The notes below the pieces were generated by a model. That model was not told where the DNA came from. It made no database searches and saw only the letters and a program-made list of their open reading frames with translations. Source: Pelomyxa schiedti (Eukaryota > Protista > Evosea). Taken from it: a stretch of 64,000 bases of DNA. This document shows, one piece after another, positions 27,261 through 32,778 of the stretch (position 1 is its first letter; each line of letters opens with the position of its first letter). The translations under genes and the position numbers were made by a program. The stretch spans positions 27,025-91,024 of the forward strand of contig JAHLWZ010000508.1 in NCBI GenBank assembly GCA_020536535.1. Direction: 5' to 3'.

Positions 27261-29691
27261 ATGTCTGCAACGACTGCGTCGGGAACAAGTGGGAGTGCGG
27301 TTGGTGTGGGTGTGACGGGTATAGCGGCGACGGTCAAGATCGTCACTGCTTCCGGGACAAAGCAGGTGACCGTCCAGGCTGACTCGTCGTGGCTCGGCAG
27401 CCAGCTCATCAATGCCGTCGATCCCTTGGGCAAAATCGTGCGCGCCCAACGTCGCTCACATTTCGCGCATTTGATTTTAGTTTTTGTTGTTGGTATTGGA
27501 TTTGCTGATGTTTGTCTCACACACAACAGAAACTACTGTGGGGTGGAAAGTTTATCAAGCCAGATGTCACTCTTGGTGAACAGGCACTCCCACCTGTAGT
27601 GAGAATCATCGCTCTGGCGGAAACTTCCCACGTTGTTGCCGCTGCAACCGGCTCTCCCTTGCCCTCGCTTGTGCGGACCCCTCCTTCCAATTCTCCAACA
27701 CAAGCACCAACCGATGCGACTGCTTCTGCTCCCACTCTTACTACGCCGGAAGGTCCCCTGCCCATCGATGTCAAAGCGCTCGCTTCGGCGGCCTCCAATT
27801 TGGTACGAGACACGTTCACTGTGGGAGACAACTAAGGTAATCCCTAGGCTTCTCGAACGGATGGGGGTACGCACCATGATGAAGATTACTTCTTCGAAAT
27901 TGAAGACCAATCTGGTAGACGCGTTCCCTTACCAGATAAGGACCGGCAAGCTTTGATAAAAGGACTAACCCTCCAATCCAAAGGTGAGAGTTTTCCCCTT
28001 CCTTTTATCTCACTGTCCTTCAGGAGAGAAATTGTTAAGGGAAGGAGATTTTAGTACCTCTCTGCAAGTTTTTCTTGAAGCTGACGAATCTTTTTCTCAA
28101 TGGTTTCCATTCCACCAATTAATACGAAGTTTAACCAACATAGTGACGACAAAATACTTTCTGCTGTGGACAATTATGCCATACTGTGTTTAGATGTTGC
28201 TTGGTGTTACTTGAAACAAAAGTGCGCCGCCTTCATGGGTGATGCAGGGTGGAGGATAAGTAGAGCAGAAACATACTTGAGTCAATCTCATGGAGCTGAT
28301 GGTCATCGCCTTAAAATTCTGCGGGTTTGTCCACTTCACACGTATCCTCAGTTTACATCCCCTAGAATGGAGCTGACAATGCTGAGAACGTACTCTATGT
28401 CCGCCTTAAAATTCTTAAAGCAGTACTTTCCTACTACACTGGAGGTGTGTGATTTTTTTTGGTTATGTGTGCTTTTAAGATTCCCTAGACCTCACTAATG
28501 CTAAAAAATTTATTGTCGAGGCCGGTGACAAGCTCCAAGGTATGATTTCTTTTTCATTTCTTTTCCTTACAACAAAAGCGCTCAGTGTTGACGATCTCGA
28601 CCTTGCACAAGTAATGTCCATGGGTTTCACGGACAATGAATCCCGTCACGCATTACGCTCGTTCCCGCCAAAAGAAGTAAAGCTCCTTGATCATAACACA
28701 AGAGCACTAAAAAACAACAGTTTGGGATTCAGAGGGCAATTGACTTTCTTATTCAAGCTCGTGAAGAGAAACTTGCTAAACGCACCGAAGAATTGCTGTA
28801 CTTTAAGAATTAGAAAAATTCTTTATGAACTCTCTCCAGGAGAGCAGCCGAAGAGCTGAGGAGAAGGACATTTGGCAGAACTGCAAACGGGTATGTATCT
28901 ACATTCCTATTCGCTCTTTTCACAGACTTTAGAAATTGGATTGACATGTCTCTGCTGAAAGGTACAATTTAGGGTACTATAAATTATTCTAAGGAACATA
29001 GAGCTGATGGCAAGCGGGTTCTTGGAGAAATTCGTTGTTGAAGGTAACTGGATTCCGCAAGTAGCTTACCTTAACGCTTTCACAGCTCTGAGGCAAACCA
29101 ATAACAACCGAGATGAAGCCGTCAAATTACTCCTCTTGCATGGTGATTTGCTTGAACCGGCACCACCACCCGTTCCCAAAGAACCCGAACTCTCTGACGA
29201 CGACAGTGAAAAGATTGCCCACCTCGTGTCTCTGGGATATTCCATCTCGAAGTCCAAAAGTATCTCCCCATTAATTCCCCAACTTCTCCTAATTCACCCA
29301 CAGAAGCATTGAAAACATGTAATGGTGACTTGGCACTTGCATCTGACCTCCTCATTGCATCAGCGGCCAACGATCCCCCAAACTCGGACACAGCCACCTC
29401 CGCGGAGATGGGCGATGACGAGGAGGCAGAAGCCGATGCCGATGCCGATCCCGAAGCGGACGCCGGAGCAGAAGCTCCAGTTAATCTAATCACTCCAGAA
29501 GAAGAGCAGAGACGGGTAATCCCTTTCCACACCATTAAACTATCAACTAAACGTTACACAAAACAACTCCACAGGCGGCAGAGAAGGACCTCGTGCACAA
29601 CGCTGACACTGACCCCAACTCGTACCTAGGGTGCTCCCTAGACGATGAGCAGTCAGTCTACAACGAGTACTCTGCCCTCATATTCCAATAG
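27261..29691 (+). CDS. NUB1: NEDD8 ultimate buster 1 homolog (UBL, NUB1 core, three UBA domains)
   Basis: N-terminal UBL (KLLWGGKFIKPDVTLGEQ); VDNYAILCLDVAWCY; UBA-like segments (VMSMGF...RHALR, MASGF...ALRQTNNNRDEAVKLLL, LVSLGY...ALKTCNGDLALA); acidic C-terminus. Confidence 0.8.
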
Positions 29692-29837
29692 TACCCCCCC
29701 CCCGTCTCACACACAGTCGCACTGTATGCATAACAGACAAAACAATTTCGTTTTTGTATGTTTCTTGAACACGGGATTCTAAGGTTTCTCACCCACAATT
29801 AAAGCCATCACTTCAAGGAACAAAAACCAAAAGAAAC

Positions 29838-31459
29838 ATGGCAACAACAAGCACCACGTCGAGCGCGGCGAGACGCGTTGAGACCCTCACGTCTCATTTG
29901 TTGTCCGGTAACTGCCGCCAAACGAACAAAGCGCGTCCAAAATAAAATGCAAAAACCGGATTATTTAATTGGCACACTACTCTTACTCTTTTTTTGTTTT
30001 TTGTTGCTTTATGGTGGTTTTTAATATAACAAGGTGGGATGCCAAATGGACCGATTAGGGTTGTTCAAATTGGACTTGGGCCTATTGGCCAACGTATGGT
30101 CAGGTGTGCACTATGAAACTTCTATTAATGAGTTAATACTATGTCCATTTGAGGTTTGCTTATGTATTATCCTTGATAGGGATATTGCTGCCCGAAAGAA
30201 CCTCGTTTTGGTAGCAGCAATTGATGCCAACCCCGCTATATTGGGCCGCAATGTGTATGACCTGTGCAGTGTGACAGGTTCCACAACAACTGTCACTGTG
30301 TCACCACCTTCCGCGATCGGAACTGTTCCGGCTCACGTTGCTGTTGTGACAACTGTATCTGAGCTCGTGAGGCTATTCCCTCTTCTCAAACAGTGCATCA
30401 AAGCCAAGTTGAACGTTGTATCTACATGGTCCGTTTGTCTATTTCCTTTTGTTTCAATATATACGGAAAGAATACTTACTATAACTCTACAGTGAGGAGT
30501 TATCTTTCCCGTTTCACAGCCACCCTGAGCTGGCACGCCAAATTGATGCTTTGGCAAAGGCCAACAACGTGTCTGTTTTGGTAAGTTTTTTTGTTATCCT
30601 CTTGGTGTTTTATTGACACCAACATAAGGGAACTGGAATCAATCCTGGATTCCTTATGGACGCACTCCCTGTCTTCATGTCTACCCTGTGCCGCAGTGTG
30701 AGGTCTATCAATGTTCAAAGACACCAAGACTCGAGGATTCGCAGATTGCCTTGTATGTACTAATATTTTCATTACCGTCTTAATATTACTGTAGTCCAGA
30801 AAAAAATTGGGTGCGGTCTTACACTTCCCGAATGGATGAAACTGCGTGATGCAGGAAAGATCAAGCATGTTGGTTTTGCTCAATCACTGAATCTCATTGC
30901 CTCTGCTTTTGGTTGGGAGGTATAATGCATGACTGTTACAGATCAGTAACGCTTTGCAGTTGGATAAAATTGAAGACATTGTTGAACCTGTGATTGCTGA
31001 AAAAGATGTTTCCAGCCCTCTGCTTAAAGTTCCAGCTGGAACCTGCTGCGGAGTCAGACAATGTAATTTTTAGTTATTTATTTCTGTATATTATATAATA
31101 GTCTACACAATCCTCCCAGATAATATTGGACACTTCCGCATTGAAATTAACTATCTAAATAGACGGCTATGGCTACATAAAAGGGGAACGCCGCATCGTC
31201 CTTGAAATGCACGCATACAATGGACACCCCAATCCCTGTGACACAGTGAATATCACTGGTGATCCTGGTACCAGAATTCCCACATATTTTATCAACATTC
31301 ACTCACATTCGCACAGATGTTACATCCACAATCATTGGAGGAGTTAACGGGGACATCTCCACATGTGCCATTATATGTAACACACTGTCCAGTGTTGTTG
31401 CATCACACCCAGGCCTCAGGACCATGGTTGATATTTCTCTTCCTCACTGGAACCACTGA
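29838..31459 (+). CDS. NAD(P)-dependent 2,4-diaminopentanoate dehydrogenase / native amine dehydrogenase-like (DapB-like Rossmann) protein with N-terminal PTS2
   Basis: IRVVQIGLGPIG (Rossmann), LVAAID, NVVSTC|EELSFP, GTGINPGFLMD, FQKKIG, HVGF, GGVNGDISTCAIICN; about 8 short introns. The N-terminus contains RVETLTSHL (29874-29900). Confidence 0.8.
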
Positions 31460-31551
31460 TTCCCCTCGATACTACCAAAAACAAAAAAACCTGGTTGAAA
31501 TAGGTGAAGAAAAATTGTTTTTTTGGCTGCTATTCAGGAAGGGATCAAGAG

Positions 31552-32778
31552 TCACAAAACATCGGTCACTGCATAGGGCTTGAATGAGATTCTGCAGATG
31601 ACAAAGCCAGAGAGAGCATCCCTAACCTCAATGTCATTTGTTTGGTAAGAGTAAGCACCAGTATCCTTGACAACCAGCTCCTTCCCAAAATTCAGGCTGG
31701 AACCACCTGGTTCCATGTACACACAGCACTCCCTGGTTGGATCCACAACACTGAACACTCTGACAACACTTGTGATACCCCTCCCACCTTCCCCTTCAGG
31801 TGCTGGGCACCTGACTTCAAAGTATGGCCCACCAATTGGCCACAGTTCTCCTTCCGGAAGTGGTGTCCTCCTGCCGGTGTTCAGGCACACAATCCCGCCG
31901 TTGTTTCTAAGCAGTGCATAGGTCATTCCATTCCAGCACAGAAGGCTTCTAATGCAAGAGGAGGAATCGCGGATATCACCACCACCACCAGCAGGAACTT
32001 CCAGTGGCCTCGCCACCACCCTGTTCTGCTCCAGGGTATCTTGCAGCTGAATGACCATGAATCCTCCACCATCCCTCCTTAGAACCACCAGAGAATCATC
32101 GCCATCGAATTCAGCAACACCGTGGACATCCCAGTCCATGGTGACCCAGTCACTCTGAGTTAAATTGCCATTCTCTATGTCATCAAAGTTCCACAGGGCC
32201 ATTGTGCCGCCCCCATAATCGATAATCACGGCCCACCTCCTGTTGGCCCAGGTGTCACAGTCCGCGAGGTCGGGCAAGGTCTCGGGAGCGAAGTACCGTT
32301 TCCTTGTGGTGTCGACCAGCTGCATCTCCCTTTTGGAAAATTTAGAGTCGGCGGCGATCAGGGCAAACCTGTCGCCGACGGCGGGGCTGGGCGGCGGCCG
32401 GGGCCCGACCATTCCCACCACCTCGTAGGTGTGGGCGCCGAGGCGCTCGAACCGCAGCATTGTGGGAGGGTGCACGACGCCGAGGGTGGGAGACACGCTG
32501 AGCCTGACCCACTCGCAGTCGCCCAGGGCGCAGTCGCAGTCGGCGAGCTGCAGCACGACGAGCCGGGCGGGCACGACGACCCACTCGCGGCCGATGGCGG
32601 ACAGCGCGGCGGGGGTGAGGGCCCTCGCTGGGCTGCGCCGCCCGCACCACCCCCCGCCGCCCGGCGGCCGCGAGGAGGAGATGGCTCCCAGGCCAAGCGC
32701 GACGAACTGGTCGCGGGCGAGGGTGTGGTCGCGGATGGGCAGGAGGTCGTCACCACCACTGCCCTTGCCGTAGCTCAT
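31552..32778 (-). CDS. Intronless member of a lineage-expanded hypothetical protein family (408 aa)
   Basis: Single ORF; N-terminal motif ARDQFVAL...CGRRSPARAL...IGREWVV...VSPTLGVV is shared with 36908..38056. Confidence 0.8.
   Translation of the reverse strand: MSYGKGSGGDDLLPIRDHTLARDQFVALGLGAISSSRPPGGGGWCGRRSPARALTPAALSAIGREWVVVPARLVVLQLADCDCALGDCEWVRLSVSPTLGVVHPPTMLRFERLGAHTYEVVGMVGPRPPPSPAVGDRFALIAADSKFSKREMQLVDTTRKRYFAPETLPDLADCDTWANRRWAVIIDYGGGTMALWNFDDIENGNLTQSDWVTMDWDVHGVAEFDGDDSLVVLRRDGGGFMVIQLQDTLEQNRVVARPLEVPAGGGGDIRDSSSCIRSLLCWNGMTYALLRNNGGIVCLNTGRRTPLPEGELWPIGGPYFEVRCPAPEGEGGRGITSVVRVFSVVDPTRECCVYMEPGGSSLNFGKELVVKDTGAYSYQTNDIEVRDALSGFVICRISFKPYAVTDVL

Follow-up and report, generated by a model that had tools for sequence, protein, structure and literature searches.

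Anaerobic peroxisomes were recognised in 2020-2022, and their function is poorly defined. Does Pelomyxa schiedti direct a dehydrogenase of bacterial ancestry to these organelles? The question is raised by a nine-exon gene on the plus strand at positions 29838-31459 of a 64,000-nucleotide stretch of P. schiedti DNA (contig JAHLWZ010000508.1, positions 27,025 to 91,024; this whole stretch is called the window below, and coordinates refer to it unless a contig is named). Every intron of the gene has the form GT..AG, and the coding sequence of 1077 nt specifies 358 amino acids with no internal stops. The product is identical to GenBank entry KAH3761763.1 (also P0018), and the gene is present as a single copy in the 52-Mb P. 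schiedti assembly. Judged from its sequence, KAH3761763.1 is a credible and previously unlisted candidate cargo of the import receptor PEX7 in anaerobic peroxisomes, where the five PTS2 candidates published so far (type 2 targeting signals, explained below) are implausible non-enzymes.

The case begins with exon 1 (29838..29907), which holds the start codon and a 23-residue N-terminal extension, Ser/Thr/Ala-rich at first and then bearing the signal; it codes for MATTSTTSSAARRVETLTSHLLS plus one extra base. The original prediction, drawn from the window alone, had placed in this exon a nonapeptide resembling a peroxisomal targeting signal of type 2 (PTS2), and both its coordinates and its fit proved exact: RVETLTSHL occupies residues 13-21 (29874..29900), conforms to [RK]-[LVI]-x5-[HQ]-[LAF] and has Leu at position 5 (Leu17). 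Intron 1 (29908..30033; 126 nt, phase 1), with its GT donor at 29908 and its AG acceptor at 30032-33, separates exon 1 from exon 2. The two exons join in frame, the junction reading G-G-MPNGPIRVVQIGLGPIG.

Nonapeptides of the same kind are found in related eukaryotic proteins. They read RVNLLSSHL in a Pelomyxa-like genome (L012), again on a separate exon 1, RLATLAGHV in Mastigamoeba balamuthi, RVAAVAEQL in P0017, RIDVLAGQI in P0023, RM[ED][VM][LM]SR[HQ][VIF] in the P0020 cluster and RVEVLSRHV in P0151. The pattern R-[LVIM]-xx-[LVM]-xx-[HQ]-[LVI] is kept in seven of the nine eukaryotic lineages, with divergent flanks. Positions 1, 2, 5, 8 and 9 are conserved in class (position 5 being L, V or M in the orthologues); positions 3, 4, 6 and 7 and both flanks vary, and position 8 switches between H and Q, with changing flanks, even inside one cluster of >90% identity. 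The PTS2 consensus constrains positions 1, 2, 5, 8 and 9, H/Q being its classic alternation (PMC7710942). The residues that precede the GxGxxG motif of the enzyme number mostly 9-10 in 111 bacterial homologues, versus 22-36 in the eukaryotic clade, and a PTS2-like nonapeptide lies ahead of GxGxxG in none of the 111. An apparent match from residue 4 in a Woesearchaeota-binned contig (L018) was discarded, as its true start is MMEKQKF... and leaves no extension. In the 111 bacterial homologues, R[LVI]x5[HQ][LA] occurs at a frequency of ~5.6e-5 per position, or ~0.2% per N-terminus, so that the motif in one protein alone would not be significant genome-wide; it is raised above chance by its conservation in the orthologues. 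The relaxed pattern has a frequency of 2.5e-4 per position elsewhere in the same proteins.

The signal lies outside the folded enzyme. Domain alignments with the Ord family profile and with structures in the PDB begin at residue 31, and the nonapeptide falls within the first ~40 residues. An AlphaFold (AF2) model of the protein has a mean predicted local distance difference test score (pLDDT) of 82.6 and a first strand that spans residues 31-36; the preceding residues 1-29 (pLDDT 39-53) stand outside the fold and include a predicted helix at 9-22. A flexible N-terminal helix, as modelled here, is what would be expected of a free, helix-forming PTS2.

The original prediction had made import depend on a PEX7 gene in the genome, and one is present. 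Thirteen peroxins have been described in P. schiedti, among them Pex7 (Pelo_8985), together with a peroxisomal processing peptidase (Zahonova et al. 2022, PMC8887013). Two peptides taken from that Pex7 sequence, back-translated as degenerate DNA patterns, matched 590 nt apart on one strand of contig G000:C702. The gene found there (~136.9-138.0 kb, plus strand; loci L103 and L104) has exons that read as the published protein and several short introns, one of them immediately after ...SWDDTVKL. For a 37-residue exon of this gene, the best natural match in the PDB is yeast Pex7p (3W15; E 2.5e-11), other natural WD40 proteins giving E >= 4e-4. The conservation of the pattern, the presence of PEX7 and the fact that the signal lies clear of the fold all strengthen the PTS2 reading, and we consider it probable that RVETLTSHL functions as a PTS2, import of the protein into peroxisomes being the predicted outcome.

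A number of observations weigh against this reading. Thr at position 6 of the nonapeptide falls outside the stricter, Petriv-type consensus, and several orthologues depart from canonical PTS2 in having M at position 2 or one of V, I and F at position 9. R and/or H/Q have been lost in two lineages, which have the degenerate versions SLKDLAESA (P0021/P0022) and RLTEIKCCL (L005). No contig covers 29734-30051 in three single-cell RNA libraries produced in the P. schiedti genome study, which speak neither for nor against exon 1 and the exon 1/2 junction; the longest contig ends at ~30052, within exon 2. Furthermore, P. schiedti, alone in the clade, has a methionine (Met26, MPNGPIR...; ATG at 30039-30041) at the bacterial-type start. 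An in-frame TAA (30027-30029) near the 3' end of intron 1 lies three codons upstream of this ATG, so that transcription from within intron 1 would yield the Met26 protein. A shorter or second form, cytosolic and starting from Met26, is possible.

The gap in RNA coverage, Met26 and the TAA would also fit an enzyme that is simply cytosolic in P. schiedti, either made from a transcript begun inside intron 1 or carrying a nonapeptide that goes unrecognised, as a relic or as a sequence with another use; the loss of the motif from two related lineages indicates that targeting can be lost within the clade. We think this unlikely on several grounds. The GenBank model contains exon 1, whose GC content is exon-like at 0.59, against 0.34 for intron 1 (over the gene, exons range from 43 to 59% and introns from 26 to 40%, and the upstream spacer stands at 42%), and the P. 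schiedti nonapeptide is fully canonical by the general pattern. L012, the nearest genome, shares the layout of exon 1 and intron, with a canonical RVNLLSSHL and no alternative Met. The sole GT..AG pair that gives an open frame in L012 defines a 40-nt intron joining MADITKATARVNLLSSHL to SGGILRV..., at a position within two bases of P. schiedti intron 1, and exon 1 is obligatory there because the frame is closed by a stop just upstream and offers no Met ahead of the Rossmann motif. Other orthologues likewise have no Met at the start of the domain, so their extension must be translated. In P. schiedti, translation would then begin at the first ATG and include the nonapeptide.

The extension might alternatively be the presequence of a protein of the mitochondrion-related organelle (MRO), a hydrogenosome-like compartment in whose amino-acid metabolism the enzyme would take part. 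PTS2 signals and mitochondrial presequences are known to look alike, and the likeness is seen here: the extension is rich in Ser, Thr, Ala and Arg and is predicted to form a helix, and the M. balamuthi protein starts with MLSAAVSRL..., which resembles a classical presequence. What has been conserved, however, is a fixed spacing (R, hydrophobic, xx, hydrophobic, xx, H/Q, hydrophobic) rather than charge or amphipathicity. Position 3 of the nonapeptide is acidic in five lineages and the whole P0017 extension is net acidic, both atypical of presequences, and the protein is missing from the published list of P. schiedti MRO proteins. An MRO location accordingly seems improbable to us, and a peroxisomal one remains the preferred prediction.

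The enzyme behind the signal has a bacterial pedigree. A profile-free search with exon 3 recovered a full-length orthologue from M. balamuthi (EukProt m51a1_g10526; P0004), along with fragments of open reading frames (ORFs) belonging to two uncultured genomes, their ends coinciding exactly with the starts of introns 3 and 5 in P. schiedti. With P0004 as the query, matches were obtained to the P. schiedti protein, to a 5'-truncated transcript of Mastigella eilhardi, to environmental sequences of 51-67% identity and to over 2000 proteins of prokaryotes (~53% identity at best); the high-scoring matches included no orthologue from Entamoeba. The best matches in bacterial genomes were metagenome-assembled genomes of Gemmatimonadota (52-53% identity), followed by Saprospiraceae, Latescibacterota, Desulfobacterota and others. 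In a maximum-likelihood tree of 76 sequences (quick search, with support from the Shimodaira-Hasegawa-like approximate likelihood ratio test, SH-aLRT, only), all nine sequences of eukaryotic type form a single clade (SH-aLRT 100), nested in a clade of bacterial proteins (97). Among the nine, the Pelomyxa protein pairs with that of Mastigella (99), and the one from Mastigamoeba with an environmental sequence (100). A single lateral transfer from a bacterium to the ancestor of these eukaryotes is well supported by the tree, and the lateral acquisition put forward in the original prediction is borne out by this nesting. The same prediction had the enzyme retargeted by the gain of a PTS2-bearing exon. 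Its PTS2 half agrees with the pattern kept in seven of nine lineages and with the missing extension in bacteria, but the gain of an exon is no more than one possibility, since in the intron-poor L005 and P0151 the signal-bearing extension runs straight into the domain; the intron may be secondary, or may have been lost there.

Two environmental relatives deserve mention in this context. Metagenome contigs from ENA/Logan (L097-L099) belong to an uncultured, gene-dense and intron-poor eukaryote and carry an intronless orthologue with RVEVLSRHV, next to genes for Vps4 and an enhancer-of-rudimentary homologue; this host may not be an archamoebid, in which case the transferred gene would have a host range wider than the named Archamoebae. 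In P0023, an in-frame insert at the exon 8/9 boundary coincides with the position of P. schiedti intron 8 and resembles a retained intron.

What kind of dehydrogenase was acquired? The gene model for exons 2-9 is firm, introns 2-8 being confirmed at the predicted bases by spliced RNA contigs, and each exon can be compared separately with family profiles: NCBIfam NF040740 (ornith_Ord) is matched in collinear order by exons 3-9, and PF19328 (DAP_DH_C) by exons 5, 6, 7 and 9. Exon 2 (30034..30103) contributes a linker, the alternative Met26 and the Rossmann motif GLGPIG (30072-30089; residues 37-42), its junction with exon 3 being covered by RNA contig X1. Exon 3 (30180..30428) supplies the remainder of the NAD(P)-binding domain (NF040740 positions 19-100) and on its own matches PDB entry 7XDU at E 2.8e-6. 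Exon 4 (30493..30580) bears the catalytic Glu131 (30494-30496) in the motif STCEEL, which straddles the exon 3/4 junction. Exon 5 (30629..30752) contains GTGINPGF and the substrate-pocket stretch QRHQDSRIRRLP, with Arg190 at 30719-30721 and Arg197 at 30740-30742, both invariant in alignment A1. The DAP_DH_C domain runs through exon 6 (30795..30919; PF19328 positions 38-77), exon 7 (30960..31062; positions 78-111) and exon 8 (31163..31267) into exon 9 (31317..31459; positions 159-194), which ends with the stop codon TGA at 31457-31459; the motif FQKKIG straddles the exon 5/6 junction. Thus all three motifs that had been noticed at the outset in a DapB-like Rossmann enzyme are found in the nine-exon model. 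The protein terminates in ...PHWNH and has no C-terminal targeting signal of the other type (PTS1). A short 3' untranslated region (31460..31489) follows; an A-run after 31489 in RNA contig X2 puts the start of the poly(A) near 31489.

The complete protein scores 118.9 bits with PF19328 (cut-off 23.3), the domain being preceded by the Rossmann motif, and 247.6 bits with NF040740 over residues 31-355, below the 400-bit cut-off for equivalogs; the orthologues score 237-254 bits with the latter profile and the nearest bacterial proteins 257-284 bits. The closest structures are 7XDU (E 5e-57), for which no paper was found in the literature, and AmDH4 of Petrotoga mobilis (6G1H/6G1M; E 4e-49). Native amine dehydrogenases acting on neutral substrates are distant matches (E ~1e-18). 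The protein is therefore placed, by profile and structure matches, in the superfamily of Ord and native amine dehydrogenases (nat-AmDHs), with a DapB-like Rossmann domain followed by DAP_DH_C, as had been proposed. The GenBank name of KAH3761763.1, "dihydrodipicolinate reductase", was rejected: P0018 has no match at E <= 1e-5 to the DapB equivalog TIGR00036 (cut-off 122 bits), and its bacterial relatives score 38-44 bits, so that the name is a legacy misannotation. Misnaming of the DapB type is known for the native amine dehydrogenase family (PMC11164908).

The pocket can be compared with that of AmDH4, whose R161, N163 and H264 we take to bind the carboxylate of the substrate. The P. schiedti protein keeps R161 as Arg190, changes N163 to Gln192 and has Met292, adjoined by His293, opposite H264; AmDH4 F168 is replaced by Arg197. 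The catalytic residue of AmDH4, E102 (PMC9325545), is kept as Glu131. A survey of the family distinguishes G2, the true 2,4-diaminopentanoate dehydrogenases, from an orphan group, G1, in which Arg takes the place of the G2 Phe at position P12 (Elisee et al. 2024, PMC11164908). The G1 pattern consists of Arg at P9 and P12 and His at P15; G1 substrates are unknown, and its gene neighbourhoods are uninformative (PMC11164908). From Arg197, a single aligned position, the P. schiedti clade can tentatively be called G1-like, if AmDH4 Phe168 corresponds to P12. Arg190 and Arg197 would suit the G1 pattern; there is no His opposite AmDH4 His264. The ten flanking ORFs at six bacterial loci likewise have unrelated functions and form no consistent neighbourhood.

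Taken at face value, the Pfam and NCBIfam names would make the protein a true 2,4-diaminopentanoate dehydrogenase (Ord) in oxidative ornithine degradation, an activity mentioned in the original prediction. The top family model is indeed ornith_Ord, 7XDU and AmDH4 are the nearest structures, and some G1 enzymes do act on 2,4-diaminopentanoate (PMC11164908). We nonetheless consider this identity highly improbable. The score falls well short of the equivalog cut-off (248 versus 400 bits), Arg replaces AmDH4 Phe168, and His264 has no His opposite. Nor do the partner genes, for which a search had been suggested, appear in exon-wise, six-frame searches of the P. schiedti assembly: there is no match to OrtA (NF040739) or to D-ornithine aminomutase (PF09043; ornithine/lysine), and OrtB (NF040741) gives only generic matches of 31-33 bits to pyridoxal phosphate enzymes, which are also obtained in 14 of 14 control genomes. 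As the assembly is incomplete, and as two of the families matched none of the control genomes, their absence counts as moderate evidence. The low score, the Arg at the Phe168 position and the missing OrtA, OrtB and aminomutase together argue that the protein is neither the Ord of ornithine fermentation nor, in view of the profile result given above, a DapB. Its substrate is most likely an amino or keto acid that bears a carboxylate, as the protein retains the catalytic Glu131 and also Arg190, the carboxylate-binding residue, and one other than 2,4-diaminopentanoate, as Arg197 stands where Ord enzymes have Phe, in the manner of the orphan G1.

The following scenario would account for these data. 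The ancestor of Pelomyxa, Mastigella, Mastigamoeba and some uncultured eukaryotes would have acquired the dehydrogenase gene from a bacterium, after which the gene would have gained spliceosomal introns and an N-terminal extension of 20-30 residues. In P. schiedti, the cytosolic receptor PEX7 would bind RVETLTSHL and carry the enzyme, already folded, into the anaerobic peroxisome, which has no catalase and where the reported processing peptidase may remove the presequence after import. Inside the organelle, the enzyme would most likely interconvert the amino and keto groups of a carboxylate-bearing substrate with NAD(P)(H).

A second possible cargo lies outside the window, on contig G000:C276 (~27.6-28.6 kb, minus strand; L105). 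It is a gene of the saccharopine-dehydrogenase family (PF03435), whose product begins MSSPSSASAGSATATDATTSASASSAS-RRVGVMMGHM-SPNPTWSNKVLVIGAG and shares the design of KAH3761763.1: a Ser/Thr/Ala-rich leader, a nonapeptide RRV..M..HM, some ten residues and a Rossmann motif. One may speculate that in free-living Archamoebae and related uncultured anaerobic eukaryotes PEX7 imports a small set of bacteria-derived amino-acid and diamine dehydrogenases, including the Ord-like enzyme and this saccharopine-dehydrogenase-like protein, by way of a relaxed PTS2 with V, I or M at position 9; we offer this joint reading as a tentative suggestion. Were it true, these would be the first credible PEX7 cargoes of the group, they would explain why PEX7 is kept in Pelomyxa and Mastigamoeba and lost in Entamoeba, and a new nitrogen or redox function would be added to oxygen-free peroxisomes. 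Already by itself, a dehydrogenase with a conserved PTS2 pattern points to amino-acid or amine redox chemistry in the anaerobic peroxisome.

The surroundings of the gene can be described briefly. An upstream gene (29007-29691, plus strand), whose product has an acidic Ala/Asp/Glu-rich tail, is covered by RNA contigs that end at 29691-29724. Its end and the exon 1 ATG are ~115-150 nt apart, which confines the promoter and 5' untranslated region of the dehydrogenase gene to that short spacer. Downstream, a convergent neighbour (31552-32778, minus strand) is an intronless, GC-rich (~62%) ORF of 408 amino acids that belongs to a very large, lineage-specific family: the assembly contains at least 106 matches of 30-55% identity, many of which lie in tandem clusters (C1002, C481, C621, C1073 and others). 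Two peroxisomal candidates of the published Table S3, Pelo_17991 (listed for PTS2) and Pelo_17059 (listed for PTS1), resemble this family, judging from the printed sequences; if they are members, their motifs are likely to be chance matches. A DNA run (X4) differs from the window at three places in the dehydrogenase gene, none of which affects the protein: a synonymous A>C in codon 4 of exon 1 (29849), a 1-nt deletion in intron 1 (29989) and a 13-nt insertion in intron 8 (31292). They are probably allelic or assembly variants.

How does the P. schiedti protein compare with systems already described? With AmDH4 and 7XDU, which are of the G2 type, it has a two-domain fold family in common, collinear over residues 31-355 (E 4e-49 to 5e-57), as well as the catalytic Glu and the Arg opposite Arg161. 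It departs from AmDH4 in having Arg at Phe168, Gln for Asn163 and no His at His264, and in scoring below the Ord cut-off. Unlike bacterial Ord genes, it is found in a eukaryotic host, is interrupted by eight introns, encodes an N-terminal extension and has no Ort/Ora partner genes that could be found. It resembles G1 in its Ord-like pocket, with the conserved carboxylate-binding Arg and an extra Arg for the Ord Phe, and the bacterial relatives identified here are, like G1, without a conserved gene neighbourhood; G1, however, was described in prokaryotes and metagenomes, without a targeting signal (PMC11164908). Native amine dehydrogenases are of interest in biocatalysis, and a eukaryotic member, compartmentalised as predicted here, offers a new angle on the substrate of the orphan branch.

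The predicted signal finds its closest parallel in Nannochloropsis, where a short first exon carries the PTS2 and the catalytic domain starts in exon 2 (Kechasov et al. 2020, PMC7710942). Orthologous stramenopile signals vary as RVx5HL, RMx5HL, RLx5HV and RIx5HM, and Nannochloropsis PTS2 proteins have a Cys shortly past the nonapeptide, at the processing site (PMC7710942); in one environmental cluster of our enzyme, RGCCG directly follows the nonapeptide. The two systems are alike in a canonical nonapeptide within 40 residues of the N-terminus, a hydrophobic position 5, a signal on exon 1 and the use of orthologue conservation as the criterion. They differ in that P. schiedti is an anaerobic member of Amoebozoa, that its cargo was laterally acquired, that its orthologues often have V or I at position 9, and that the assignment made here is sequence-based. 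Organism and organelle are those of the published P. schiedti matrix candidates, among which several amino-acid enzymes were predicted to be peroxisomal (PMC8887013). The PTS2 screen in that study used R[LI]x5HL and returned five candidates, none of them an enzyme: two ankyrin proteins, a RabGAP, an E2/RWD protein and a kinase-like protein (PMC8887013). KAH3761763.1 is absent from its tables and was missed because RVETLTSHL lies outside R[LI]x5HL; the M. balamuthi orthologue (RLx5HV), for which no paper linking Mastigamoeba with this enzyme name was found, would also evade it. The search motif thus appears too narrow for Archamoebae. PTS2 cargoes and nat-AmDH family enzymes are both known classes, and the P. 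schiedti protein joins the second as a new member and, by prediction, the first.

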